NCBI RefSeq assembly: GCF_006345805.1
Contig: NC_042997.1
Location: 82,212,001-82,276,000 of the forward strand
From: Octopus sinensis
Taxonomy: Eukaryota
Direction of reading: 5' to 3'
Length of the DNA: 64,000 bases
Shown: in pieces, positions 1-49,200 of the stretch
How positions within the stretch are numbered: position 1 is the stretch's first letter
How the letters are laid out: every line of letters starts with the position of its first letter
Position numbers and translations under genes: made by a program
Notes under the pieces: generated by a model
What the model saw: only the letters and a program-made list of their open reading frames with translations
What the model was told of the DNA's origin: nothing
Databases searched by the model: none

Positions 1-1445
1 TACCGATTCTACGACAGACAAGACCACGACAACCATCAAATCCACCATTGACAATCCCTGTACCAAGGAGAATATTGACGCCGGTAAATTCTATTTCGCT
101 CATCCGAACAAAAAGTTCTTTATTCAATGTAACAAGTGGGGTACTTACTTTGTAATGCCGTGTGCACCCGGTACAATCTGGTCACAAAGCGCCTATACCT
201 GCATTGCAGATTATAGCAACGTTAACAACAATGTTAAAACTTAACATACCGTTTCTACGACAGACAAGACCACGACAACCATCAAATCCACCATTAACAA
301 TCCCTGTACCAAGGAGAATATTGACGCCGGTAAATTCTATTTCGTTCATCCAACAAAAATGTCTTTATTCAATGTAACAAGTGGGGTACATACTTTGTAA
401 TGCCGTGTGCACCGGGTACAATGTGGTCACAAAGCGCCTATACCTGCATTGTAGATGATAGCAACGTTAGCGACAACAATGTTAACACTCAACATACCGA
501 TTCTACGACAGACAAGACCACGACAACAAACAACTCCACCATTAACAATCCCTGTACCAAGGAGAATATTGACGCCGGTAAATTCTATTTCGCTCATCCA
601 AACAAAAAGTTCTTTATTCAATGTAACGAGTGGAGTACATACTTTGTAATACCGTGTGCACCGGGTACAATGTGGTCACAAAGCGCCTATACCTGCATTG
701 CAGATGATAGCAACGTTAACAACAATGTTAACACTCAACATACCGATTCTACGACAGACAAGACCACGACAACCACCAAATCCACCATTAACAATCCCTG
801 TACCAAGGAGAATAGTGACGCCGGTAAATTTTATTTCGCTCATCCGAACAAAAAGTTCTTTATTCAATGTAACCAGTGGGGTACATACTTTGTAATGCCG
901 TGTGCACCGGGTACAATGTGGTCACAAAGCGCCTATACCTATTTCTTTACTACCCACAAGGGGCTAAACACAGAGGGGACAAACAAGGACAGACAAACGG
1001 ATTAAGTCGATTACATCGACCCCAGTGCGTAATTGGTACTTATTTAATCGACCCCGAAAGGATGAAAGGCAAAGTCAACCTCGGCGGAATTTGAACTCAG
1101 AACGTAGCGGCAGACGAAATACCGCGAAGCATTTCGCCCGACGTGCTAACGATTCTGCCAGCTCGCCGCCTTTTCTGCTGCATTGCAGATGATAGCAACG
1201 TTAACAACAACAATGTTAGCAATCAACAGACCATAGCTACGACTGGGGGAAACCCCGAACACCACCAAATCCACCATTAACAATCCCTGTACGAAGGAGT
1301 ATTTTACCGCTGGTAAATTTTATTTTCACTTCCAAATAAAAATTTATTTATTCAATGTACAGAATTCGCTACATACTTTGTAATGCGTGTGCGGAAGGAA
1401 CATGGTGGTCACAAAGGACATATGCATTGATTCATAATTTATAAA
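1..1445 (+). pseudogene. 3' exon of a chitin-binding (CBM14/peritrophin-A-like) repeat gene, at least 5 tandem ~246-bp units, disrupted; runs off the window start
   Basis: NPC codons start at 53, 299, 547, 793 and 1282. Each unit encodes NPCTKENIDAGKFYFAHPNKKFFIQCNxWGTYFVMPCAPGTMWSQSAYTC plus a Thr/Asn-rich linker. Lesions: CAA>TAA stop at 242-244, 1-nt deletion near 352, SINE insertion at 941, further frameshifts in the last unit. Confidence 0.8.
941..1170 (-). mobile_element. tRNA-derived SINE (main family, GGCGGCGAGCTGGCAGAATCGTTAGC head)
   Basis: Reverse complement matches the copy at 19889-20120. It splits GCCTATACCT|GCATTGCAG in repeat unit 4. Confidence 0.9.
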
Positions 1446-2624
1446 AGCGAATTACCAAACTATTATGCTCGACACCATGCTATGTTTGTTCATTCGAACT
1501 ATAAATGCGTTTCTTTTAAAATATTTGTGTGTACTGCTATTATACTTTAAATTCAACCTTGTGTTTTTCTAATATAACACGTGACAAATATGATTTTGCC
1601 TATATTTTCCTATCGTAATTTCTTGCCAAAGTGTTTTTCATTATTCTTTATTTCTCATAAACGAAATGTGATGTACAAAATATGAAATGGTCATTATAAT
1701 ATCGATATTTTTACTTTCGTTTATTCACATGATTTTTCCTGCGTATTGTATAATATTCCATAAGCGAAGATGCTTTTCGCATGACGAGTCTTATGTGATT
1801 TAGAAATTGTTAGATATTTGGTATCCCTTAAGATATTTTCCGTCCACCTCCATAAAATTGTATTTCTTATGTCAAAAATTTTAAATATTGTACATAATCA
1901 GTACCTATAAATAAAATATATATTCCTATATAATTTCTTATTGTTTTCGTTTTATAATTCCTATATTCATTATTAGTGTATTGAAACACTCACATACTCA
2001 CACACATAAAAACTTTCTCACACACACTCATATAAGTATTATCTGTTTCACATAATTAATTGTGGTCATGCTGCAGCACCACTTTACATCACCTAGATTT
2101 CAGATAAATCATCCATCTAACTATGAACTACGTCCGACGTTGCTTAACTTTTATGACCGTATGAGAACCGCTGTTTTCAATGTGATATGGCCTTACTTCA
2201 AATATATATAAATAACTCGATTAATATTTTTAGAGTTCATCAGTAAGAGTTCATGCAATGAGTTTGATGAGAGAAATCTAACAACATTGGTTCTTCAAAA
2301 GTTACTGGTGTTTTCTTTGTTTTGTATCACAGAACTATATGAGTTGTACCACCACAATACTTATAATTTCATTTTTGACCAATGAGGAACATCATAACAC
2401 TTCCTGCCTTCAGATCTTAGTTTCTTTACCTTACAATTTGTACGTTTATCCCCACTGCTTCTTTTCTCATGTACATTGATGCTTAGCTGTCTCATTCAGT
2501 CATTCCGATCAGTTCTCGTCAATTCCGGCTGAAACATATTTCCGTTCCAGTTTAGATTTGGGTGTTTTCTTTATTTTGATGTCGGAGGAAAATCTATGCT
2601 CATAAATGTACACACACACACACA

Positions 2625-8708: not shown

Positions 8709-8982
8709 GTGATGTGCCTTGATTGTCGTATTTTGAATGGTCATTGGCGGCTAGCTGTTGCAGTTCAATTCAGGAGAATATTTCTATTGAAAGGTTTGTT
8801 TATGGAATTTGCGTAGGTGTTATACTAAAAAGCATTAGTGATAAAGTTAAGAAGTAGAAGGTGGAGCATAGGAAGAAGAAGAAGATGATGATGATGATGA
8901 TGACGATGTTGATGATGATGATGAAGAAGAAGAAGAAGAAGAAGAAGAAGAAGAAGGAGAAGGAGAAGAAGAAGAAAAAGAA

Positions 8983-9041
<59 letters not shown>

Positions 9042-9115
9042 CGACGATGATGATGATAATAATGATGATGATGAAGAAGAAGAGGAAGAAGAAGAAAGAG
9101 AAGGGAGAATGTGAA
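8278..9115. repeat. Tandem ~150-bp unique unit alternating with (GAA)n/(GAT)n tracts
   Basis: The block TGCCTTGATTG...GAATTTGCGTAGGTGTTATACTAAAAAGCATTAG...GGAGCA occurs at ~8395-8546 and ~8715-8868. Confidence 0.9.
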
Positions 9116-10253
9116 TGAGTGGAAGTGGTGAGGTGTTGTATGACTTGAAGTTGGCACGCTATGGATTATAGCTGTGATTGGGGCTGATTTGTAATGGATT
9201 CTTTGGAATGTAATATTTGCGTGTGTATTTGTGTTATTCTAAAGCTGAGGTGTATAAATCGTTTGTCGTAGACCCGTTAAGAAGTGGCCTGTATTTTGTA
9301 ATAAAGAGAGTTTCTTTACTTATTCGTTGTCTCGAGGTTGTATCGTCCCTGAATTGGTAGAGGGGGAAAATCCTGAAGCCTGGTGTTTTGTTGTTGGCGC
9401 AAGTATCTATGTGTTGGCTGAAAGCCATTTTTCTGTTTTGGGGAATTTTTATCTGGGATCTGTGCAGGGCCATTCTTTTACGCAAACTATTTTTTGTTTG
9501 GCCTATGTACTGCTCTTGACACCCAGAGCAGGTTAGTGTGTATATCAGGTTCTCCGAGGCACATGTGAAGTTGCTTTTCACTGTAAACCGTTGTCCCTGT
9601 TTGAAGGAGAACTCTGATCCCTCAATTAGATAATCGCATATCCCGCAATTGGGTCTTCCACATTTTTTTACTGTCGGCTTCTGTGTTGAAGAGTGTATTC
9701 GGGCTTGTGTTAGGAGACTTTTCATAGATTTAGGGTGTCTCTTGCTTTTTATGATCGTGTGTGTTTGGAAGATTGTGTTCATTCTGTGGTCTTTTTTTAG
9801 GAGGGGTATGTTTTCGAGGATGGTGCCGAAGGCTTCATTGTTGAGAGGGTTGTGTGTGGAGATATATATGGTAAGGCTTTTGGTCGTAAATTTTTCTTTG
9901 ATTTGGGATGTCTCAGTTCCTGGATGTTAAGTTGAAGGGCACGTTGAATGCATATGTCAATAAGTGAACTCCCCTTCCTCGATATCCTCATTAAGAAAGC
10001 TAATAATGTAATAGAAACAGACATATATTATAAGCCTACAGATTCTAAGCAATATCTTCCATTCAATTCATGCCACCCCAGACACACCAGAATGAATATC
10101 CCCTTCAATCTAGCAAAAAGGATATGTACTATAGTTTCTAATGCAAACACCAGAGACACACGTCTACAAGAACTAAAAGATACCCTCATCACCAGCACGT
10201 TGAATGCATATGTCAATAAGTGAAGGTGGGTAGTTCCTGGTGATGAGGGTATC
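9115..10253 (-). mobile_element. 5'-truncated Penelope-like element (end of RT, GIY-YIG endonuclease) with an internal inversion
   Basis: Minus ORF 9234-9782 has CGRPNCGIC..NLIYTLTC..CQEQYIGQT..LRKRMALH. The plus segment 9969-10194 has LPFLD..TDIYYKPTDS.QYL.F.SCHP. Confidence 0.92.
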
Positions 10254-12300: not shown

Positions 12301-12764
12301 ATATATTTTTAGATTTTTTTCTCAGGGTAGTATCCGGTAGGACCGGATACTACAGTCTCTTTGTTGTATAGATCCGCATGTCAAGCCACTACTGCATCAC
12401 CTTTTGTTGCTTGCTTAATGTCGATGTCATACAGGAAACGGTAATGAGGAATGTAACAAATTTTATATGGGAAATATTAAAGCGCTTCAGTCAGTCGTGG
12501 AAGTCGAAACAATATTTACAATTACTCGTTAGGTACCTTGTGAACAATGTGTATAGAAACAACGTCCCTACCTACTTTTTACAATTCAATACTTCATAGA
12601 AATTATTCACCAACATTTTTGATTAATGACGTAAATGCATAAAAAAAGAAAAGGGAAAAATCTTACTACTTTCCAAGTCTGTTGCATCCGGTATGAAGAG
12701 GATAAATAGAAGTATTTTTCCCCAACACTTTACTTGTGAGAATTGCTTGAAAGTAGCAACTACG

Positions 12765-12992
12765 ATGAAGTGGCTTATCGAAGCTTGCATATTTTTACCG
12801 TTGCTCTGCAGTGGCCAACCAACTAAAGACATCGTAACTGAAGGAAAAGTCGGCGATGACATTGTCGAACGTGTTTTAGATGTCCTTACATCATATAATA
12901 TATCCTTTGATAGGAAATGTCTCCAGGATTTAGCTTTTCTCCGAAGCAATAATGGTGTTCCATATATAACTGGAAAAGGAGGTATATGGCGG
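12765..12992 (+). CDS. Exon 1 of a secreted chitin-binding protein (signal peptide and start of the N-terminal domain)
   Basis: ATG at 12765, MKWLIEACIFLPLLCSG|QPT signal-like peptide, ends ...GKGGIWR at the phase-0 donor CGG|GTAAGC. Confidence 0.85.
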
Positions 12993-13257
12993 GTAAGCGT
13001 TTTCATTTAATGCAAAGAACTCACTTAAATTAGAGATTAGCATATGATTTATTAGGCGCTTAACCGGTAAATAGGTAATACCTGGATTCTCAGGGGACTT
13101 CTTTCACCCAATGTATACTATTTTCTAATATGAACACAATGTCACACATTTGCCAGGCAGGGAGAACAGTCGATTGTATCGGCTCTTAGCTTCATTGATA
13201 CTTATCTTATTGACCCTGGAAGGAGAACGTGAGCGCAACCGATTTTGCAAAGTTATA

Positions 13258-13650
13258 TCTTTATATATAAAAGAAAGGTCGTGTGTCTGTCTACTCCGAT
13301 TTAGATTCCTAACTACTCCCACATTTTGCGATGCAGTTTAACCAAAACCGGGTATCTTATAGTCGTGATTCATATCAAGCCCTTCTGGGTATTAGTGCGC
13401 GTCTACGATGAGTCTACGATTTTAAAAATAATTTACCATCATTTTTCCCATTTTAATGCATATTTTTTTAATATAAGGGAAGTAACTCTCTAAATATGTC
13501 TACGATGAGTCAACGATTTTAAAAAAAATTTACCATAATTTTTTTTTCCATTTTTAATGCATTTTTTGCTATTTTTTTGCTATAACTCTCTAAAAATGCT
13601 TTATAGTTATTTCCCTTACAAACCCGAGCAACGCCGGGCGATACTGCTAG
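13258..13650 (+). mobile_element. Non-autonomous Helitron in intron 1
   Basis: A|TC 5' end, 3' hairpin CCCGAGCAACGCCGGG followed by CTAG|T, no TSD, internal tandem repeat. Confidence 0.85.
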
Positions 13651-13865
13651 TTAATAATATATTATAAGCTTTCAAGAAGACTAGTTCACCAAAACAGAAA
13701 GTTATCTTAACAACAAAATTCTATTCTTAATTCCTAGGTAAAAAAAAAAAACAACTATATATTCATGTCATTGTTTCCATACTTCTGCTAATCTATCGAA
13801 CTATTGTTTTTACTTTTATTTTATTTATTTTACATTTGTCAAATTGTCTATATTCTATATTCTAG

Positions 13866-14118
13866 GTTAACAGTTCTCAACTAACTGATGCACAAACTGC
13901 CTGCCAGACATCCTTGTTCAACCAATGTAGAATTAGCAAACTATTGACTGGTGAAGAAGTTTCTTCATTTGATATAGCTGATCTTGATAAACCCCTTTAT
14001 TCAGCTCTTGCAATGATCTTCTATGTTTTATCACTTGATAAATCTATACCTATTCAAGACTATGAAAAATATTGTAAGCTACCCATCAAACCATTGAAAT
14101 TATCTAATCAAGAACTTA
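13866..14118 (+). CDS. Exon 2 of the secreted chitin-binding protein
   Basis: Acceptor TTCTAG|GTT (phase 0), open frame VNSSQLTDAQ...DLDKPLYSALAMIFY...SNQEL, donor A|GTAAGT (phase 1). Phases match both neighbouring exons. Confidence 0.85.
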
Positions 14119-14157
14119 GTAAGTAATATATATATATTTAGAAATCATTTCATTTAT

Positions 14158-14339
14158 GTGTGTACGTGTGAGGGTGTATGTATGTATGTATGTATGTATG
14201 TATGTATGTATGTATGTATGTATGTAGTATGTATGTATGTATTTGATCTTCAAAAAAGGGTGAAAAATAGAGACTGGCTCTTAACAGAAGAGCTGTTTTT
14301 AAATCCCTACAGAAGTTGTGGATGTTGCTATTACTGTTG

Positions 14340-14371
<32 letters not shown>

Positions 14372-14421
14372 GGTGGTGGTGGTGTTGTTGTTGTTGTGTT
14401 GTTGTTGTTGTTGTTGTTGTT
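14158..14421. repeat. (TATG)n and (TGT/TGG)n microsatellites in intron 2
   Basis: Direct reading. Confidence 0.9.
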
Positions 14422-15051
14422 GAAATTAATAGAGGCCTAGCTGACAATTTTTTTTTGGGGAATAGAATCCTAAACTATAAGTTAGTGGTAGACAATTATT
14501 CGATTTACTTCCTTACTGCTCCTGATAGACATGTCCATCTCTCAGTTTCTTGGACTGTATTCTTAATGCACAAACCGATTTTGTGAGCGTAGCAGACTTA
14601 ATATTTTGTCAAATTTAACACTACCACCAAACCCTGAGAGTCTTGGCGGGTCTACGCTAGTGCTAACTTTTGGGCCTTGTCACTAGTTTGAACATACTGT
14701 CTACTCACCAGTTTTGGATGTTCTCGGTAAAAGCTCAAAGCTGTAAAAATATTCAGTTTTCAGTTAGTCTATTACTTATGGAAAAATTAGAACTTTAAGA
14801 GCCGACTTATAAACTTTCCTTGTAGAATGAACATTAATTAAATTGAAATGCTATTCAAAGTGCGCACCAAAGACTATAGAAAAAGGCAGGTTTCAGCCAA
14901 ACTATTAAATGTACATAAAAGTAGTTAGCATCAACACATTTGTCACAACGAATACACTTGAATCCAATTTTGTTTTTGTTTTTTTGTTTTTGTTTTTTTG
15001 CAATATATGTTAACTGTGTATAATATTTTCTGTGATATCTTCTTAATTCAG

Positions 15052-15821
15052 CAGATGAAACTACAGAAAGTGTCATGAATCCATGTACAACAGAAAATGT
15101 TGAAGCAGGAAGATTCTATTTCGCTCATCCAGACCCTAGAAAGTACATTAGATGCACTGAATGGGGTACATTCTCCGTGATGTTGTGTGCGCCGGGTACA
15201 ATATGGTCACAGAGTGTCACTGAATGTGTTAGAGAGAACAGCAACCCGCTAACTAACGATAACACTGAAGCAACCAAAGACTCGGAGACGTCTACCTCAT
15301 GCACCATTCTTAAAAATAACCCATGCACGAAAGAAAATACTGACGCAGGTAAATTCTATTTTGCTCACCCAGATCCTCAGAAATTCATTCAATGTACGGA
15401 ATGGAGTTCATATTACGAAATGCCATGTCCTCTGGGCACAGTTTGGTCACAGATTGCCTATACATGCATTAGAAAAAGTGGAAACAAGATGAATGAAGAT
15501 AGCACAACAGTAACGTCTCAAGGCACACAAATGATCCTACCCACACTTCTTAACAACAACCCATGCACTAAAGAAAATATTGGCGCTGGTAAATTTTATT
15601 TCAGTCACCCAGACCCAACAAAGTTCATTCAATGTACGGAATGGGGTTCATATTATGAAATGCCATGTGCGCCGGGCACAGTTTGGTCACCGATTGCCTA
15701 TACATGTATTCATAATTTCATAAAATGTAACAGTAGAAAAGAAACTACCCCAGCACCCAGCAGATCTTCCCTTCCATTCTCTTCAACACTTAAATGGGTA
15801 ACCAGAGGTGAACTTTCGTAA
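15052..15821 (+). CDS. Exon 3: three 240-bp chitin-binding (CBM14/peritrophin-A-like) repeats and stop codon
   Basis: Acceptor TTCAG|CAGATG in phase 1; NPC at 15078, 15318 and 15558; TAA ends at 15821. Spliced CDS is 228+253+770 = 1251 nt (416 aa). Confidence 0.9.
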
Positions 15822-16078: not shown

Positions 16079-16121
16079 AATAAAGAAAATCAAATAATAT
16101 ATAATTACTGTCACTAATAAA
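16079..16121 (+). promoter_or_regulatory. Candidate polyadenylation signals
   Basis: AATAAA at 16079-16084 and 16116-16121, about 260-300 nt after the stop codon. Confidence 0.45.
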
Positions 16122-20120: not shown

Positions 20121-23100
20121 GTATTCTTCCGGAAAGGATTGTAATTTATGAAATTGACAGAGACAATTGTAATTTATTACAGTTATCACTCAAAAGACAT
20201 AGGTCCTCCCAAAATTAACTTTTGCAAGTCCATATACGAGGGCCTGGTCGAAAAAAACTCCGCAAGACACAGAAGATAGAGAGAAGGGATTATAATCCCT
20301 TCTTCGAAAGGTAAGCCACATTTCATGGTTTCACTCACAGTAGGATGTTTAAATGTTCGTGGCCTGGGGTCGGATTGGAAGCAAGGTCGCCATCTTAATG
20401 ACCTCAGGTCACATAGTCTGGATGTGTTAGTGGCCACAGAGACCAGGCTGAGTGGGTTGCGGGCCTTTTCCCCCACTCCTGAACGGCTGCCAGAAATTTA
20501 TTTCTCTATGACAACCGGGGAGGAAGGAGTGGTGTCGCGATCCTATTCAAGAAGAATCTGGTTTCCGAGACTAGAACTATCTTTATCGACCCGGAAGGCA
20601 GGTTGGTATTCCTTGACGTGAGAATCAGCGGTAAGACTTTCAGGTTGGTTGGTGTCTATGCCCCCTCCAAGGCTGGGCAATCTGATTTTTTTAGAAGCCT
20701 AGAAAATTTCCTCGACACATCCCACACTTTAGTACTGTTAGATGACTTTAACACAATCTGCGATGCACGCGTAGATTGTGTTGGCTCAAATCCAAATAGA
20801 AAAGGAAAGTTATGCCTCACCGATCTGCTCAGTCGCTTTCAGCTGGCAGATCGGTACAGGCTAGAATTTCCGAACGCTCCAGTGTAGACCTGGACGAACA
20901 GCGACGGATCTTCTAGATCTTATTTAGATAGAATTTTAGTTAGACGGAAGGACAAGGAGATAACTAGTTGTCCACAATTCCACTTTGTTAGCTACAGCGA
21001 CCACAAATTTGTGTCCTGTAAGCTGGTTTTAGATAGAATATGTAGACAAGGCCCCGGCTACTGGAAACTCAACAGGTCGCTTTTGACCTGTGAGGAGTAC
21101 AAGAACCGGATTAGTCAGTTATTGAAGAGGGCTCTCACAGGCACCATTATTAACAACAAATGGTGGAGAGCCCTCAAAAGAGCCATAAAAATTGAGTCAA
21201 TTAGATTTAGTAAGGAATTAGTTGCTAAGAAGAATAGAATAGAAAGAGACTTAGTTAAGGCCCTAAAAGAGGCATTGGAGAGAGGCAGTGTGGTCCAAGT
21301 GTTAGCATCGAGATTGGCGCTCAACCAACAACTCGAAGTTAAACACGAAGGTTGCATTGTCAGGTCTAAGGTTCGTGTAATGGGTCGATAAGAAATCAAC
21401 GCTGCGAGATGGGCCCGTGTGGTAGAAGGTCTATGATGTACAACCAAGGGCAATTGGTAAACGAAGGAGATGTGCAAGGTTTTTACGAGCATTTCGGCCA
21501 GCTTTTCGGGAGGAGCGGCGGACTGGAGAGCAGGGTGAACCCTATGGACTTCCTTGCCGGTTTGCCGCGTCTCTCGGGGCAGGAAGCGGAATACTGTGAA
21601 GGACCGATCACAGCTGCAGGAGTAGAGGACGTTTTGTCGAATTGTCGTAGGGACAGGTCGCCGGGACTGGGTGGTCTTACCTACGAATTCTATTATAGTA
21701 TACCAGACTTGTTTGGGCACCTACTGGCTTGTGTTTTTACGAACTATCCACAGAATGGGTTCATCCTGAGATCTGTGAATCGGGGAGTAGTGACGCTGCT
21801 TAGATAGGACCCAAACAAGGGGGACATTATAGATAATTTTCGGCACATCATTCTGCTTAACACAGAGCTGAAGATTTTGGCCAAGGTATTAGCAAAAGGA
21901 TTGGCTCGGATCGTGGGTGGACTAGTCGGCGAGGCACAAACCTGTGCCATCCCGGGCTGGTCCATACACGAGAATCTCCATCTTATACGCTATACCTTAG
22001 TGCGAGTTAATAGGGTTCTGACAAAAGTGGGGCGCTGGTGCATTTAGACCAGGCTAAAGCTTTCAATAGAGTCGACCATCGGTATCTGGTGACAGTTCTT
22101 GCGGCAATCGGGTTGGGCCCGATCTTTCACGGTTAGATCATAGCTTTATACAGCAACATTGACTCGATCGTTCGGGTGAACGGCTTCTTTTCGGAGCCGT
22201 TCTCTGTCAAGCGCTCAGTTCGTCAAGGATGTCCGCTCTCCCCCTTTCTGTACGTGATGGCCCTCGAGCCCTTACTGCGGAAGCTGGAGGGTTTGAGTGG
22301 TGTCCCGCGAGTTCTAGATCTTGGAAGATCAGTGACGGTATATGCGGACGACATCATCATCATCGTATCTGAAGCGAGTCACCCACAGAAGATAGGTGAA
22401 GCCATGAAAGAATACAAGGCGGTGGTAGGAACAAAAATTAACCGTGAGAAGTCGGTCGGCTTGCAGCTCGGCACCTGGAAAGGCAGTGAAAAATACTCGG
22501 GGTCTGGTTTTGGCCAGACCTACAGTTAGAGAAGAATTGGAGTGAGGTCACGGGAAGGGTGGCTCATCTAACCCAGACCTGGTCTGGGCGATGGCTATCC
22601 CTGAAAGGGAGGGCGGAGGTTGCAAATGTGTTCATCGCATCTGTAATAACCTACCGCCTAACCGTCGTGCCTTGCTCCGATTCGTGGCTATGCAAGATGG
22701 AACGATTGCTTTTCCGTTTTTGTTTTTTTTTGTGGAAGGGCAAAAAACCTCTTGTAAGGCGCTCTATCTGTTGCCAACAACCGCTAAAGGGTGGGCTTGG
22801 GATGTCATGGCTGATGCTGCGCAAGCTCGCACTGAGGCTAAGGCATCTTTGGCTTTACCTGGATGGTGAACGGGTGTGGTCTCCGTTCGTCAAGCTGTTC
22901 CTTCCTAGGCTCACTAGTTTTAGTGAACTAGAACCATGGATCAAATGTAGACCAAAGTTGGGTGCTTGGCAGGCCGAGTGTCGCAAGGCTCTCGTGCTCT
23001 TCTGCCGCACGAGCAATGCTGGTAGCGTGGCTTCTACCTCGTCATTTTATAGAGGGTTGGTAGAGGCCAAGTGTGACGACGCGCTGAGGGAAACCCTGGG

Positions 23101-27340: not shown

Positions 27341-29254
27341 ATGATCCTTGAGAACTGTCACAACAAGCGCAGAAATCTCAGCACCCCATGGATTGACTAT
27401 AAAAAGGCCTTCGACAGTATACCGCATCCATGGATCTTGAGATCGCTGGACATCTTCAAAATTTCCCCTGTGATTTCAAACTTCCTGAAGCACAATATGT
27501 CGTTATGGAATACGAATCTCCAATTATACCACTCTAATGGAGTACTTGCCTCAGAAAATATAAACATCAACTGTGGAATTTTTCAAGGTGACTCACTTTC
27601 ACCTTTAATATTCTGCATAGCCCTAATACCCCTTACAAGTGAATTAAACAGAACAGGGTATGGGTATAAAATTGCCAATAAAAAAATAAGCCATCTATTT
27701 TATATGGATGACTTAAAACTTTATGGTAAAGACAATAATGAACTTGAAGGCCTATTGCGCACTGTGAAAGCATTCAGCGATGACATCGGGATGGAGTTTG
27801 GACTTGAGAAGTGTGCCAAGGCCACTTTCCAGAAAGGGAAAGTGAAGACCACAAATTCAGTCGTGTTAGATGTTGACACAGTCATAAGAGAGCTTGAGCA
27901 AGAACAAACATACAAATATTTAGGGATAAATGAAGGCTCTGGTATTCAGCATGCAAGCATGAAAGAGAAGATCAGGAAGGAATGTTATAGGAGAGTTCGT
28001 GCAGTCCTGAAATCTGAACTAAATGCACGTAACAAGGTGTTAGCTATAAATTCCTTAGCAGTTCCAGTTGTTACTTATAGCTACAATATGTTGAACTGGA
28101 ATATGAGTGAAGTAAAAAATATAGATAGGAAAATACGCAAGCTGCTGAGTTGTAATAGGATGCACCACCCAAAGGCAGACGTAGATCGCCTTTACCTTCC
28201 CAGAGCCCAAGGAGGTCGAGGCCTGATACTATTTGAACTAGCTTACAAAACAACCACAATTGGACTGGCCAAATATCTCGAAATATCGAATGACTGGATG
28301 CTAAAGCTCGTGGAAAATCACGAGAGACGAAAGAAGCTTCATTCTATCATCAAGGAAAGCAAAAAATTTGCTATTGATCTCGTGCAGGATACCCAAACAG
28401 AACAACCCGAGGGAAGTACGGCAATTATTGTTGCAAACAAGGTGAAAATGATGGCAACGAAAAAAGCGCACGAGCAATTGGCTGATAGGTGGGAGGAGAA
28501 ACCTCTGCACGGCAAATATGTGACCCGCAGCAAACAAGCTGATGTTGACCAGAAGCAAACCCATCAGTGGCTACGGAGCTCAGGGCTAAAAGCAGAGAGC
28601 GAAGGTTTCATCCTGGCTGCTCAAGATCAAAGCCTATTAACCCGGAACTACCAGGCCAATGTGATGAAAAATGGAGCAGACCCAAAATGCCGATTCTGCA
28701 ACGACATGATTGAAACAGTGGACCACCTAATCTCTGAATGTAAAGTCTTAGCACCAGTGGAGTATAAATTAAGACATGACAGAGTTGGCCAATATCTCCA
28801 CTGGCTAATAAGTCGGCATTACAATATCAAAACTGCCGACAAGTGGTATAATCACCACCCTGAGGCTGTAACTGAAGGAGAAAATGTAACCATTCTGTGG
28901 GACTTTCTAGTACATACAGACCGAACCATCAAGGCCAATAAACCAGATATTGTTGTGAAAGACCAAAACAATAAAGTTTGCTTATTGATCGACATGAGCA
29001 TCCCCTGTGATCATAATATCTCAGCGAAAGAGTTTGACAAGCTCAGAAAATATAAAGACCTACTCATTGAAATTGAGAAAATGTGGCATCTCAAGGCGGT
29101 TACAATACTAGTGATCGTAGGAGCACTAGGAATGATCAAGAAGGGAACCGAAAATTATATGAGAATGATCCCTGGCTTACCATCCCTGCAAGAAGTGCAA
29201 AAGATTGTCTTAACTGGTACATCACACGTATTGAGAAGAGCATTGTCGATGTGA
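27341..29254 (+). CDS. 5'-truncated but uninterrupted R4/Dong-clade retrotransposon ORF (RT, CCHC, restriction-like endonuclease)
   Basis: 637-codon open frame: WIDYKKAFDS, GIFQGDSLSP, FYMDD, CRFC..ETVDHLISEC, RHD, PDIVVKD. Flanked by (TAA)n at ~27268-27320 and ~29433-29458. Confidence 0.92.
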   Translation: MILENCHNKRRNLSTPWIDYKKAFDSIPHPWILRSLDIFKISPVISNFLKHNMSLWNTNLQLYHSNGVLASENININCGIFQGDSLSPLIFCIALIPLTSELNRTGYGYKIANKKISHLFYMDDLKLYGKDNNELEGLLRTVKAFSDDIGMEFGLEKCAKATFQKGKVKTTNSVVLDVDTVIRELEQEQTYKYLGINEGSGIQHASMKEKIRKECYRRVRAVLKSELNARNKVLAINSLAVPVVTYSYNMLNWNMSEVKNIDRKIRKLLSCNRMHHPKADVDRLYLPRAQGGRGLILFELAYKTTTIGLAKYLEISNDWMLKLVENHERRKKLHSIIKESKKFAIDLVQDTQTEQPEGSTAIIVANKVKMMATKKAHEQLADRWEEKPLHGKYVTRSKQADVDQKQTHQWLRSSGLKAESEGFILAAQDQSLLTRNYQANVMKNGADPKCRFCNDMIETVDHLISECKVLAPVEYKLRHDRVGQYLHWLISRHYNIKTADKWYNHHPEAVTEGENVTILWDFLVHTDRTIKANKPDIVVKDQNNKVCLLIDMSIPCDHNISAKEFDKLRKYKDLLIEIEKMWHLKAVTILVIVGALGMIKKGTENYMRMIPGLPSLQEVQKIVLTGTSHVLRRALSM

Positions 29255-35025: not shown

Positions 35026-35667
35026 CATGCAATCACTCGAGAATTTCTGCGATTCACCTCAGCATTCACAGTAAACTTCTCGTTCACAAACACGAGAGTT
35101 TTTCCTGTACATTGATGCTCGATGAATGACAGAAGCTTTGGGCATCTCTCGGTACTGATTGCTTTGGCCTTGGCTGTTAGGAGGTTATGGCATCATTGAA
35201 CATAGCTAGACATGCCAAAGTTCCTATTCATAGCTGTGGGCACTATGGAAAGGGACACATTGCGTTTTTTGCGAGAGTTATCATGGATGTGGATGGGTTG
35301 GCTTCAATCGAGAGTTTGAGGCTAGCGAGAAACTTTCGATTGCGTTTAGAATCACTTCTATCTTGTGTCCTTGTCTATCAATCTTTCCCTCTTCTTTAAA
35401 CTGTTTATACACACGATTAACTGTTACTTTTGGAAGTTTCGTCAACTTAACAATGTTATTGACAGTGTGCCCGGCACGTGCCAATACAACAATGGCGGAA
35501 CGATTCTGTTGCTCCATGACTTTCTGTTGTCCAATTAGTTCGCTATTTACCTGAAAAATAAAGATGTAGATTAGATTTTCAAGCAAGCAAGGTTTCGTCC
35601 AAAATGAAATGTTAAACTCACTAAGGCAACTGCTTAGAATTGGTCTCAATTTATCTGCAAGACCCTG
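35026..35667 (-). mobile_element. 5' half of a decayed DD37D (maT)-like Tc1/mariner transposon
   Basis: TA|CAGGG terminus; MEQQNRSAIVVLARAGH..IVKLTKLPKVTVNRVYK; RCPKLL..EKFTVNAEVNRRNSRVIA. Confidence 0.75.
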
Positions 35668-35687
35668 TACACACACACACACACACA

Positions 35688-37520
35688 TTGTTGTATTTCG
35701 GGATGGTAATTCTTTTGCCAAATAAACACACGCACTATATATTTTTTCTTCACTCGTTTATTACTTTTCTTATTTTATTATTTTAACTCCTGTCCATTGT
35801 CCGGAAAGTTTTCGTCACATAACTGTGACCTCTTCAGCGACACTTTTCGTTTTCGGATGTGTTCTTGCTCCACTTACTCTATTCTGTTTTTATAAGGTCT
35901 GTATTCTTCTGTGCCCATGCGTTTGTGTCCTTGTTTGTGTGTGAGCGTGTGTGTGCTTGTGTGTGTATGTTTGTGTGTATGCTTGTGTGTGTGTATCATA
36001 GTTTTTAGTAGCAGTGTGGCCTTCACCTCAGCCCATCCTCTCCCCATTGTGCTGTTGCTGTCCCAAGACCCTCCAAAATATATAGCAAAAATAAATATGG
36101 TACAGTTCCTGTATTTCTCTGTGTACGTTTGTTCGCCCACGGTGTTGCCATTGTGGTTGTTGTTATTGTAATCGTTGTCATGGCCGCTGCTACTGTCGTT
36201 GTTGTGTTGTTGTCATTATTATGGCCGTCCATGAAATTTCTTGTGTGTGTTTGTATGTGTGAATCGGTTCGCTTTATATGTTGTATATATCCATGCCCTT
36301 TATATAGTTTCATTCATTTATTTTATCTATCTCTATGTCTTATACCTACAACTACCTACATTGGAGAGACTGTACGCAGCATAGTAGAGCGTATAGGTGA
36401 CATTAGCGAGAGCTCAAAGAAGGGAAAAGCTCGTCAGTGTTTTACCAACATGCTCAGGCAGAACATGGAGGCTCGATTAATAAAATAGAGGTTAAAGTAC
36501 TATCGACACATAGAAGTGACATGACATTTAGACAGATCACAGAGGCTACACACATAACAGTAGACAGACCGAGCCTCAATAGAAAACATGAGTGGAACAG
36601 TAACACCCACTACCGCCACACCACACCACAACACATGACTAAAGACAAAAGGGATGCGAAGTGAGAGGGAAAAATCGTAAATAATACACAGAAACACAGG
36701 GTAATACACACACAATAGATATTTATGCACTTACCTGTGATATGAGAAATGGAGATAGATGTATAAAATAAGTAAATATATAAATAGATAAATAAATATA
36801 TAAATATATTTGTCACATACCTGTGATAAATATAAGACATAGAGATAGATAAAATGAATAAATGAAACTATATAAAGGGTATGGATACATATAACATATG
36901 AAGTGAACCCATACACACACACAAACATACACAAGAAATTTCATGGACGGCTATAATAATAACGACAACAAAATTAACAGCGACATTCAGCAGCGGCCAA
37001 CACAATGTTGGCAGTAACAACAACAGCCACGAAGGCAACACCGTGGGCGAACACACGTACACAGAAGTATACAGGAACTGTACCATATGAATGAAGAAAA
37101 ATATATATATATTGGGGTCTTAGGACAGCAACAGCACAATGGGGGTGGGGATGGGGTTGAGGGGAAGGCCACGCTACTGCTAAAAACTATGATACGCACA
37201 CAATCATGCACACACACACACTCACACACACACACACAACCACACGCACGCACAAACAAACAAACAAACAAACAAGGACACAAACGCACGCGTACATAAA
37301 GATACAGACCTTAGAAGAACAGAATAGAGTAAGTGGAGCAAGAAGACATCCGAAAACGAAAAATGTCGCTGAAGAGGTCACAGTTGTGTGACGAAAAATT
37401 TCCGGACAATGGACATGAGTTAAAATAATAAAATAAGAACAGTAATAAACGAATGAAGAAAAATATATATAGTGGTGTGTTTATTTGGCCAAAAAAACAA
37501 AAACATCCCGAAATACAACA
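35688..37520. mobile_element. Truncated Penelope-like element (+) with an inverted 5' pseudo-LTR
   Basis: Arms at ~35688-36345 (minus) and ~36800-37520 (plus) flank a GIY-YIG C-terminal fragment (YIGET.R..ERI; RQITEA..I..DRPSLNRK.EW). Minimal hammerheads at 35798-35842 (-) and 37364-37408 (+). Confidence 0.8.
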
Positions 37521-46201: not shown

Positions 46202-49200
46202 AACAACAAACAAGATGAGGACAAATAGCCGTCAAATGTAAATAATGTACAAGGGGAACCATATTAGTAATTTTAGGCCCATAATTCTACTTAATATAGG
46301 GTTAAAGAGTTTGGCCAACGTACTAGCTAAGGGGTTGGCGCGTGTCGCGGAGGAATTTATTGAGAAGGTGCAGACATACGCCATCCCAGGCAGGTCGATC
46401 CAGGATAATCCCCATCTCCTTCGCTACATCTTAGAGAGGGTGGGTAAGTCATCCGGTAAAGGTGGGGCACTGGTCCATTTAGACCAGAGTAAAGCTTTTG
46501 ATAGGGTAGATCACCAGTATCTGGCAGCAGACCTCGAGGCGACTGGGCTAGGCCCAGATTTCCGTGGTTGGATCACTGCAATTTATGGCGGCATTAAATC
46601 TACAGTCCAGATAAATAGTTACCTGTCGGAGCCGTTTAGTATCGAGCTCTCGGTTTGTCAGGGCCCCCTGTCTCCGCTTCTGTACGTACTGGCTCTTGAG
46701 CCATTGCTGCAGAGGTTGGAGAGTTTGGGGTGTATCCCCAATGAACTAGGATGTGGTAAGTCTGTTTCTGCATATGCGGATGACGTCAACATCACCGTGT
46801 CTAATGAAGCTCAGCTAACTTGTGTAAAGGATGCAAGCAAAGGATACAAGTCGGTGGCAGGGGCAAAAATTAACACGCACAAGTCCATCGGCTTGCGGCT
46901 CGGCACTTGGAGTGGCAAGGCGATACCGTCTAGTGTCGTGGGACACTAGACGGATGGTCTTGTTAAGTTGTTTGGAGTGTGGTTTGGACCGGATTCCCAG
47001 AAGGAGAAGAATTGGAGTGAGGTGGCAAACAGTGAGGCTGCCCTAACCCGGACTTTTTCTGGAAGGGTGCTATCCCTGAAAGGAAGGGTGGAGGTGGTGC
47101 AGGTGCATATTGCATCTGTTATCACCGTCTAAAGGTGGATTAGGGATGCCGTGGCTGATGATGCGCAGGCATGCGCCGAGACTGAGGCACCTCTGTCTCT
47201 ACCTGGAGGGTGACCAGGTATGGAATCCGCTGGCAGAGACGTTCTTTCCGCGACGAGCCTCCTTGGAGGAGTTTACATCCAGTTTCATAAAAGGCGTAAC
47301 CTGACGGAATGGCAAAAATATCGCCGACAAGCCCCCGTGCTAAACCAAAAGGCGGGAAAGGCCGGCAGCGGGGGTACTACATTGATACTCTATAGCGGGC
47401 TGGAAGAGTTCAAGAGGGATGACGTCCTAGGAGAAGCTCTGGAGCTCGATGAGCGCCATCTAGCCAACCAGTTCCAATGAACTTTCGGCCCGGGGTACCT
47501 GGATAACTATTAGAAATCCCTGACCTGACAGTGCTATAGGAGTGCTTTACCCGTTCGGGATAAACTGTCTAGGCATGGAATATCTGTGTCACCGGCATGC
47601 CCAAGGTGCGGGCAGGATGATGAAACCGTTTTGCACGCCCTTGTTCAGTGTCGGAAGCTTTTGGGCTTGATAATTCACGCAGAACACGTGCTATCGCATC
47701 TGAGAATAGTACAGCTATCAGCTGAGTCCATTATTAAGGTTGCATCGCCACCCGGACTATCAAAGGAAGGTAAGACGTGTTTCTTATGCGCAGGTGCAGT
47801 ACTGAGAGAGTGTATATGGAAAACTAGGATGAAAGGTGTCGCGATGGGAACATTCATCTGCGGCCCTGGTTTGATATACTAATTCAGATACCATCTGAAG
47901 AGCAAGATAGGACTGGAGAAAAGACTCCTGTCGCGAAGTGTATACGGGAAAATATCGAAGGATGTAGAAAGGAAGTTGGGGGTGTCTGACCCTGCTAAAT
48001 TTCAACCATAGTAGTACGGTGTAGCCGATGAACTTCACAGGCAAAGTTTTAAAAATTTTTTAAATTATATATATCATCATTAAAACTCATTTATGAACCC
48101 ATGAACACTTTTCGTTTGTGATGTCCTGACCTGTCCACTGTATGTCCGATAATTATTATCATAATGAAGAATATATCTCTACCACACTCGTGTCGGGGTT
48201 TTTTGGTTGTTGCTTATTTGTGTTCGTGAGTTCAAATTTGTTATGTATTTAATGCTTTATTGTTATTGTTGCACTTGTTGGAATTGAACTGTTGTTAATT
48301 TGGTAACAATTATTTTCGCCCTTCGGGGCAGAAAATTCTTAAACTATGAAATATTGTTGTGAAATCGCTAACTTTGCAGGGTAAAAATTATTTTTGTCAA
48401 AAATTATTTTTGTCTAATGTTATTCCTTTTTGAAGGAAGTTGTTTACTGTGAAAATGTTTCCCGTCATGGAGTACAATTTGTTTTCGAATGAAGATTTCT
48501 CGGAGTTGGAAAAGGATAATGAACAATCAACACATGTGCAAAAGGAAAAGCAAAGTTTTCCGGCCGCGGTGGGCGGCAGGATGATAACAATGGAAGTTAC
48601 AATGGCAGAACTCCAAATATTGAAACCGACTATAACAAAAAAAAAATAAAAAAAACAGATAGTGATATAAAACTATTCCCTCCTCAAGAGGTTTTACAGA
48701 ATATTACGGCAAAAACTGTTGTATACAAAACGTTCAATATGAAAGAAAAGAGAATTACGACATATAAAAGTGAGGCCTATCTGGAACAGAATAATTTACG
48801 TCGACTGTGGAAGAGGACATGCCACGGTCGAAGCTCAATTCGCCGATGAAAATACGGCAAGGATTTGTCTACAATGACCTTAAAAAAATGAAGACGTGAT
48901 ATTATTGCCAACGTACTTGAGCAGAAGAAAGGCCAAAATTAAAGTGGAAGAAGTTCCGGCAGGTATCGACGTGATATGGATAGCGGCGGCCTTTACTTAT
49001 GACCTAGAAGAGGAAATAAGAATTCTGCAAATGCAAAAAAGGAAGTAGAAAATTGGGATGGTCAGTCCCTTGAGATGGTGGTTTTAGCCACACCGGAAGT
49101 CCTTGAGGGGCTGCCCGTTAGAGTATTTATAGGCGAGGGGCTAAGCGTAAGGGTCTGTGTAGAAGGACGTAGACCGCGTTGCTTTAAATGAGGCGGGAAG

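Follow-up and report, generated by a model that had tools for sequence, protein, structure and literature searches.

A three-exon octopus gene joins a shortened GGIW-PLYS domain, with arginine at the family's near-invariant glutamate, to three CBM_14-type repeats

We analysed a window of 64,000 nucleotides (nt) from Octopus sinensis (contig NC_042997.1, positions 82,212,001 to 82,276,000), the whole stretch of DNA considered here, in which a gene on the forward strand at 12765-15821 encodes a protein of 416 amino acids (aa). We propose, with a probability of about 0.55, that this is a secreted, non-catalytic, chitin-associated protein whose N-terminal domain comes from an endolysin-related family and has lost the family's glutamate (Glu). 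The N-terminal domain belongs to an undescribed family, which we named the GGIW-PLYS domain, and it is followed by three chitin-binding-type repeats. An initial annotation of this DNA had read the protein as a putative inactive lysozyme-like domain fused to chitin-binding repeats. Its gene model, its repeats, its family assignment and the replacement of Glu by Arg all stood up, while a second replacement that it proposed, Gln by Arg, did not, and its lysozyme-like fold was not found by fold searches and is favoured by weak signals.

The three-exon, 416-aa gene was confirmed as real. Joining 12765-12992, 13866-14118 and 15052-15821 gives 1251 nt (416 codons and a stop) in consistent phase, and both introns have GT..AG ends (gtaagc..ctag and gtaagt..tcag). 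The available track of open reading frames (ORFs) shows the gene in pieces only. Exon 1 (12765-12992, 76 codons, donor gtaagc) encodes a putative signal peptide and the first half of the N-terminal domain, ending in ..GKGGIWR. Exon 2 (13866-14118, 253 nt) encodes the second half, including DLDKPLYSALAMIFYVL, and a linker, and exon 3 (15052-15821) contains linker, the three CBM_14-type repeats, a C-terminal tail and the stop codon (15819-15821). Intron 1 (12993-13865, gt..ag ends) measures 873 nt and intron 2 (14119-15051) 933 nt. The motifs quoted in the initial annotation were all found, namely GDDIVERV, DRKCLQDLAFLRSNNG, GGIWRV, which lies across the exon 1/2 junction, and DLDKPLYSALA.

Phase, splice ends and a protein of Argonauta hians agree on this coding sequence, as it had first been proposed. 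The Argonauta protein (GAB1597816.1, P0004, 396 aa) aligns from Met1 to the last residue with 57% identity (E 2e-170), continuously over junction 1 (GGIWRV(N/H)SSQL) and through the C-terminal tail; the name of its record refers to O. sinensis LOC115213595, an "uncharacterized protein". In a related octopod, a genomic contig of 3.1 kb (L001, Logan SRR11869390) contains exons 1 and 2 with identical donor and acceptor sites, and its counterpart of intron 1 has 529 nt. Junction 2 (14118^15052) falls in the poorly conserved linker and is placed there by phase, splice consensus and shared architecture, which makes it the probable join. The putative signal peptide, recognised by eye (aa 1-17, MKWLIEACIFLPLLCSG, 12765-12815) and followed by QP, is conserved in the related octopod (MKWLIISCIFLPLLCSG) and in Argonauta.

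The public Octopus vulgaris model of this locus (CAI9715384.1, P0003, 512 aa, "collagen alpha-1(XIV) chain-like") gives another picture. It includes the window residues encoded by 12813-12992 and 13866-14114 and then continues in a paralogue outside the window, omitting exon 3. If this were the true transcript, exons 1 and 2 would lie as internal exons inside a longer "collagen XIV-like" gene, with exon 3 belonging elsewhere, a reading that we consider very improbable. The model starts in another paralogue, uses an unconserved ORF (2318-2440), enters exon 1 downstream of the ATG and signal peptide and combines parts of three or more paralogues, while the Argonauta protein backs a compact three-exon gene from Met to stop. 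CAI9715384.1 is a chimera and the compact model is the better one, and the O. vulgaris gene model at this locus needs correction.

Another paralogue lies inside the window. Its 3' exon (50-1450, forward strand) has at least four CBM_14-like repeats, which are about 50% identical to exon 3. Three defects interrupt this exon: a stop codon in frame, a shift of the reading frame around 340-400 and some 150 bp inserted around 990-1140. It is a pseudogene, or else the assembly is wrong here. With such a neighbour, in a region rich in transposon debris, the gene itself could be a decaying or non-functional duplicate in a tandem cluster of paralogues, its intact frame a leftover. The ratio of nonsynonymous to synonymous substitution rates (dN/dS) against the related octopod, 0.48 overall and 0.71 in exon 2, would fit such decay. 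We nevertheless judge it very improbable, as the reading frame of 416 codons, the splice sites and the architecture are undamaged, the 57% identity to Argonauta extends over the full length, exon 1 (92% nucleotide identity to the related octopod) has a dN/dS of 0.29, and the cysteines and aromatics of the three repeats are conserved.

These repeats were recognised by Pfam, in agreement with the three chitin-binding-type repeats claimed at the outset. CBM_14 (PF01607) matched exon 3 over three stretches with 54.8 bits, well above the gathering cut-off of 22.1 (E 1e-14). Combining Pfam with a repeat alignment (A1) placed the CBM_14-like repeats at aa 170-220 (15078-15230; Pfam stretch 183-223), aa 250-300 (15318-15470) and aa 330-380 (15558-15710). 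The best matches in the PDB sequence search were the mite allergens 4zce and 2mfk, which have the CBM_14 fold, and repeat 2 matched the dust-mite allergen chain 4zce_A weakly (E 0.006). Each window repeat has four cysteines, a number also found in one or more of the intact repeats of the upstream paralogue; none of the window repeats has the canonical six cysteines with three disulfides. One whole pair, which we take to be C2 and C6 of the six-cysteine CBM_14 pattern, is missing from the three window repeats and from two intact repeats of that paralogue, and this is a coherent loss. All repeats conserve their cysteines and their aromatic residues (FYF, W, W), and the latter make chitin binding plausible.

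The N-terminal domain was not recognised in this way. Pfam and PDB sequence searches with the window protein gave nothing for it, and word-indexed homologue searches with the domain returned no more than one orthologue, in two exon pieces. With exon 2 alone as query, an exhaustive phmmer search found nine proteins, with E values of 1e-8 to 4e-4 for P0005, P0006, P0009 and P0010. The Argonauta orthologue has an identical architecture; the octopus paralogues fuse the domain either to VWA (P0005) or to one CBM_14 domain (P0010 and P0014), and two animal contigs encode it in three tandem copies (P0006 and P0009). Widening the search with a profile of ten domain copies (A2) revealed at least 287 family proteins, most of them ORFs about 190 aa long that carry a signal peptide, in which no Pfam domain was found except an occasional VWA. 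On animal contigs the domain ORF is a first exon, after which VWA and numerous FN3 exons come on its strand, and in one protein (P0096) the domain leads straight into VWA. We also noticed that two ENA contigs (L002, 10001-20500, and L003, 10001-11400) carry several paralogues, which suggests tandem arrays. No Pfam or NCBIfam model of the GGIW-PLYS domain was found, and literature searches by motif, accession and phrog_3108, a phage family discussed below, found no publication describing it.

The initial annotation had likened the octopus protein to a poorly characterised invertebrate domain with a given sequence pattern. Such a domain does exist, as one family protein (P0112, FLRRIAYVESKDG..GGIWQVD..DLRKPLYSGIA) matches that pattern almost residue for residue. 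The membership of the window protein is also firm, because a hidden Markov model (HMM) built from 120 non-cephalopod members alone scores its domain at 63.7 bits.

We then looked at what the octopus domain has kept and lost. Across the 120 members, the positions conserved in at least 90% (family numbering) are D25, G34, VV37-38, F51, L58, RR59-60, A62, E65, G69, GGIW76-79, W118, PLYSAL131-136, QA156-157, W160, F176 and L183, with Glu at position 65 in 115 of the 120 and Gln in 4. The window protein keeps GGIW (aa 72-75) and PLYSAL (aa 119-124), has LQD in place of LRR and carries Arg60 (AFLRSNNG; codon CGA, 12942-12944) where the family has its near-invariant Glu, the E of ..A.VE[TS].DG, as placed by the HMM alignment and by the ten-copy alignment. 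The proposed replacement of Glu by Arg is therefore correct. Arg stands at this position in three octopod sequences, those of the window, the related octopod and Argonauta, and the change is therefore old within octopods. By contrast, the Gln-to-Arg replacement after GGIW has no meaning, because this position varies across the family (A44, Q22, R21, G12, N11). The window protein also lacks QA..W and the final F...L helix: its HMM alignment ends at 173 of 227, before the last two helices, and the sequence then passes into the linker. Judged from these alignments, the N-terminal domain is a divergent, C-terminally shortened member of the family. At family positions 59-60 and 65, the canonical RR...E reads QD...R in the window and QN...R in Argonauta, possibly a partial swap of charges about the lost Glu. 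A compensatory salt-bridge swap (R60/E65 to D/R in octopus) was considered and dropped, as Argonauta has N/R.

Structures were predicted for two proxies of the window protein, the family member P0015 and the Argonauta orthologue. AlphaFold2 modelled P0015, from the 120-sequence alignment, as an all-alpha fold of eight helices with a predicted local distance difference test (pLDDT) of 91 and a predicted template modelling score (pTM) of 0.84; in this model helix 57-66 has the Glu at its C-terminal end and is followed by a loop that contains GGIW. The Argonauta model has a whole-chain mean pLDDT of 62.1, and blocks of its N-terminal domain (about residues 21-140) reach 90-98, so that the core fold is predicted to be kept in the octopod orthologue; its CBM_14 repeats are poorly modelled because their alignment is shallow. 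Together the models show the N-terminal domain of the window protein as a predicted all-alpha unit of about 130 aa.

A retained core raises the possibility that the octopus protein still cleaves glycan, as an antibacterial muramidase or a chitin remodeller, with another acidic residue substituting for the Glu. Some glycosidase families tolerate a relocated acid catalyst, the orthologue is confidently modelled with its core fold intact, and GGIW and PLYS are invariant. We consider continued activity quite improbable, given the joint losses of Glu (to Arg), of RR (to QD), of QA..W and of the last helices, the basic residue replacing Glu in all three octopod sequences and the relaxed constraint on exon 2.

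As the proposal links the domain to endolysins, we asked whether the family is related to the lysozyme and lytic transglycosylase enzymes. Family profiles were compared by hhalign with a profile of the SLT domains of Escherichia coli Slt70, MltE, MltC and MltD. The 16-sequence family profile scored 26.6 (P 0.0023, probability 12%), the 127-sequence profile 29.6 (P 0.00098, 22%), a phage-only profile 22.8 (P 0.011, 3.9%) and an animal-only profile 20.0 (P 0.036, 1.4%). In all four alignments the Glu of the family falls on the catalytic Glu of SLT and GIWQ on GLMQ, and in the window protein the catalytic Glu aligns with Arg. In the controls, a reversed template scored 10.8, 200 column shuffles 11.7 +/- 2.1 (maximum 19.3) and 200 six-column block shuffles 15.2 +/- 1.9 (maximum 21.6); none of the 400 shuffles reached 29.6. 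Moreover, the member of the family in Vibrio phage 172P1 (gp23; phrog_3108 E 1e-42) gave a sub-threshold Pfam SLT match (E 0.09, 12.8 bits against a cut-off of 21.3) that covers the same motif (AAHESKLG..GPAVGIYQMEPATF). PDB searches with alignments A2 and A4 gave matches at E of about 0.6-1, among them a short stretch of GG[IV]W shared with the B chain of a bacterial enterotoxin, and these were judged to be chance.

The family is shared with phages. Nearly end-to-end matches to phrog_3108, a PHROG family of unknown function, were obtained for 64 of the 120 animal members (best E 2.6e-19), and a tblastn search with P0112 found 18 phages. The joint phage and animal alignment has four invariant columns, namely the start Met, the Glu, one Gly of GGIW and the Ala of QA..W, while the Trp of QA..W and one Asn are nearly invariant. 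In phages phiKO2 and Kpn74 (Klebsiella), the late promoter is followed in order by a protein with three transmembrane segments, the phrog_3108 protein (Gp54), a transmembrane protein and a lipoprotein; the latter has 82 aa, an LAGC lipobox and an "Rz-like spanin" match. The complete annotation of phiKO2 names no other endolysin. Read from this context, the layout would be the classic one of holin, endolysin and spanin, with phrog_3108 in the endolysin slot.

Further observations were made on these phages. The genes for Gp53-Gp57 of phiKO2 (L004, 47076-48293) look like a full lysis cassette without a recognised endolysin, and the 82-aa lipoprotein of Kpn74 suggests that Gp56 and Gp57 are mis-called pieces of an outer spanin (o-spanin). 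In Kpn74 (L006, 49530-51062) the holin-like and phrog_3108 genes are annotated as one fused ORF of 265 aa. A paper on an N15-like phage makes no gene-level lysis assignment. Marine phages of Vibrio, Shewanella and Pseudoalteromonas share a different order, with a baseplate gene, a gene for a small soluble protein, the phrog_3108 gene and one for a DUF1353 protein. In the virion proteome table of phage B8b, ORF26 (phrog_3108) has no peptide counts, while the neighbouring ORF28 has them (PMC4294664). Finally, a 636-kb uncultured phage (LR756504.1; L008, 2845-3456; three places) carries a copy 43% identical to P0112, compared with 28-34% in the other phages, flanked by a large ORF that by eye is ribonucleotide-reductase-like and by one that looks topoisomerase-like. 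This megaphage copy makes one ask whether the domain was transferred horizontally between phages and animals, and in which direction.

A number of results weigh against the proposed endolysin ancestry and chitin association. Foldseek searches of the PDB with both models returned nothing significant (best E 1.3 and 0.5) and no lysozyme, SLT or GH23 structure; this was the check on which the initial annotation had staked the lysozyme-like fold, and it came out negative. The nearest lysozyme-like PDB entry, the GH73 structure 4qdn, was non-significant (E 2.1). Against viral models, the P0015 model matched an uncharacterised phage protein of 1021 aa (E 2e-5, template modelling (TM) score 0.66) and several phage proteins of about 150 aa (TM 0.5-0.7), which speaks for the phage homology, and the lysozyme-like matches in BFVD were faint ("LT_GEWL", TM 0.36; "putative endolysin", TM 0.33). 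The best HH-suite probability is only 22%, with a confident alignment of 36-67 columns. The domains of the window protein, of the Argonauta orthologue and of the octopus paralogue P0010 gave no match to the phrog_3108 HMM at E 10, so that the link from the window to phrog_3108 is transitive. On the phage side, the putative endolysin role is assigned from gene order, and in the marine phages, where the gene follows tail genes, no holin is evident near it. In the octopus protein, exon 2 is weakly constrained, as its dN/dS of 0.71 indicates. As for the repeats, four-cysteine variants of CBM_14 are not necessarily chitin binders, and chitin binding by Der p 23 is not known to have been confirmed.

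Part of this evidence would also fit an N-terminal domain that is unrelated to lysozymes and acts outside the cell as an all-alpha cap or interaction domain of a new kind, with no enzyme activity anywhere in the family. In that case the Glu would be structural or would bind a ligand or metal, and the octopod Arg would be an ordinary lineage change. Besides the two confident models that found no significant PDB fold match, Pfam at E 10 gave no SLT or lysozyme match for any of the 120 animal members, the domain always stands N-terminal to adhesion or matrix domains (VWA, FN3 and CBM_14), four other members have Gln at the Glu position, and the equivalent of the Q of GLMQ is not conserved. We hold this alternative, in both its parts, to be unlikely, though it deserves serious weight. 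It leaves unexplained an hhalign score far above 400 shuffles in a register predicted in advance, the sub-threshold SLT match of a phage member, the phage homologues placed in a holin/spanin cassette of a phage with no other named endolysin, and a Glu conserved at 96% across phages and animals.

The term "lysozyme-like", as used in the initial annotation, is thus opposed by Foldseek against the PDB with two models and by Pfam and PDB sequence searches, in which the window protein matched no SLT or lysozyme entry, and is favoured by the hhalign register, the 172P1 match and the endolysin slot. The SLT signals are individually weak, but they are mutually consistent and fit the gene order; the negative fold search and the missing SLT motifs (the Q is not conserved in the family, and AYNxG was not seen in the alignments) oppose them. 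On balance we regard a far-diverged enzyme family of the lysozyme/SLT type as fairly probable.

The preferred reading of the octopus gene can be set out as follows. The family would be related to, or descended from, a peptidoglycan-cleaving endolysin of the lysozyme/SLT kind, with the near-invariant Glu as acid catalyst. In the octopod lineage the Glu would have become Arg, and LRR, QA..W and the last helices would have been lost, which would leave the domain unable to cleave glycan. It may then have survived as a non-catalytic glycan-binding or scaffold module, which the three CBM_14 repeats would anchor to chitin, so that the two parts together could bind or cross-link chitin in an extracellular matrix; the beak, radula, suckers and gut, put forward in the initial annotation, would be candidate sites. 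We put forward a broader scheme more tentatively, at somewhat under even odds: GGIW-PLYS and phrog_3108 may form an unrecognised peptidoglycan-cleaving family, a distant branch of the lysozyme/SLT superfamily. It would serve phages as endolysin, would have been acquired or shared by animals and set at the N-terminus of secreted VWA, FN3 and CBM_14 matrix proteins, and in octopods one copy would have become a dead, chitin-tethered module.

The remaining features of the window are minor. On the forward strand, pattern scans gave a possible core promoter, the TATA-like ATAAATA at 12702-12708 (about 60 nt 5' of the ATG), and a candidate polyadenylation signal AATAAA at 16079-16084 (about 260 nt past the stop). 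The TATA-like element is weakly supported, because the 300 nt upstream of the gene are 89% identical to the related octopod, no higher than the exons. Intron 2 contains (TGTA)n and (GTT)n/(GGT)n microsatellites at 14160-14240 and 14330-14420, and a His/Leu low-complexity ORF lies upstream of the gene at 8825-9157; these stretches give rise to long ORFs in the track that are spurious. Much of the remaining sequence looks like transposon debris, and no further host genes were recognised in it: a GIY-YIG ORF (possibly from a Penelope-like element), three reverse-transcriptase ORFs and one Tc1/Sleeping-Beauty-like helix-turn-helix ORF, at 9234-9782 (reverse strand), 22176-22529, 27341-29254, 46245-46949 (forward strand) and 35281-35721 (reverse strand). 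An Rfam scan of the window found no RNA families.

These findings connect phage lysis cassettes with animal matrix proteins through a domain family that has neither a Pfam or NCBIfam model nor a structure. If the family is enzymatic, it would be a new type of endolysin that explains lysis by phages such as phiKO2, and another phage-type cell-wall enzyme used by animals. If our reading of the octopus gene is true, it would be a clean example of the passage from enzyme to binding module, paired here with chitin-binding repeats, and would bear on how cephalopods build chitinous structures.

We compared the protein with known systems, beginning with SLT (PF01464) and GH23 enzymes. Both they and the GGIW-PLYS family have a helix ending in E-[ST], 10-20 residues and then G-[LI]-[MW]-Q-[VI], E. 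coli MltD reads GIWQI, in the predicted structure of P0015 the Glu ends a helix on its C-terminal side and the GGIW loop comes next, and the phage relatives stand in endolysin position. The differences are that family members fall below the Pfam threshold, that Foldseek finds no SLT or GH23 structure, and that the window protein has no Glu. The phrog_3108 proteins (phiKO2 Gp54, Vibrio phage 172P1 gp23) share with the animal family homology over nearly the full length and the invariant positions. The phage proteins, about 160 aa long, stand alone, are cytoplasmic and have no signal peptide, whereas the window protein is secreted, fused to CBM_14 and devoid of the Glu and of the C-terminal helices.

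Catalytically dead glycosidase-fold lectins are a known class, which includes YKL-40, the IDGFs, alpha-lactalbumin and lysozyme-like proteins lacking the catalytic Glu. By analogy with them, the octopus domain may have lost its acid catalyst, retained its fold and been reused as a secreted binding or structural protein. Their enzymatic ancestry is proven, while that of the octopus domain's parent family is only inferred. The closest likeness of the C-terminal part is to peritrophins and other CBM_14 proteins (Pif/BMSP, the C-terminal domain of CHIT1, Der p 23 and Blo t 12), which are likewise secreted and have tandem CBM_14 repeats and linkers rich in Thr, Ser and Asn. VWA is the partner of CBM_14 in Pif/BMSP (PMC11291548), and octopus paralogues of our gene join the GGIW-PLYS domain with VWA. 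Unlike peritrophin-A and Pif proteins, the window protein has four of the six canonical cysteines and neither VWA nor laminin-G, and a GGIW-PLYS domain has not been described in Pif/BMSP. A shell-matrix relationship with Pif/BMSP was considered and rejected, as the gene has no VWA and the N-terminal domain is not indicated for Pif/BMSP (PMC11291548). In conclusion, the GGIW-PLYS family and its distribution over phages and animals are undescribed, while the pairing of a pseudo-glycosidase with carbohydrate-binding modules is a known theme.

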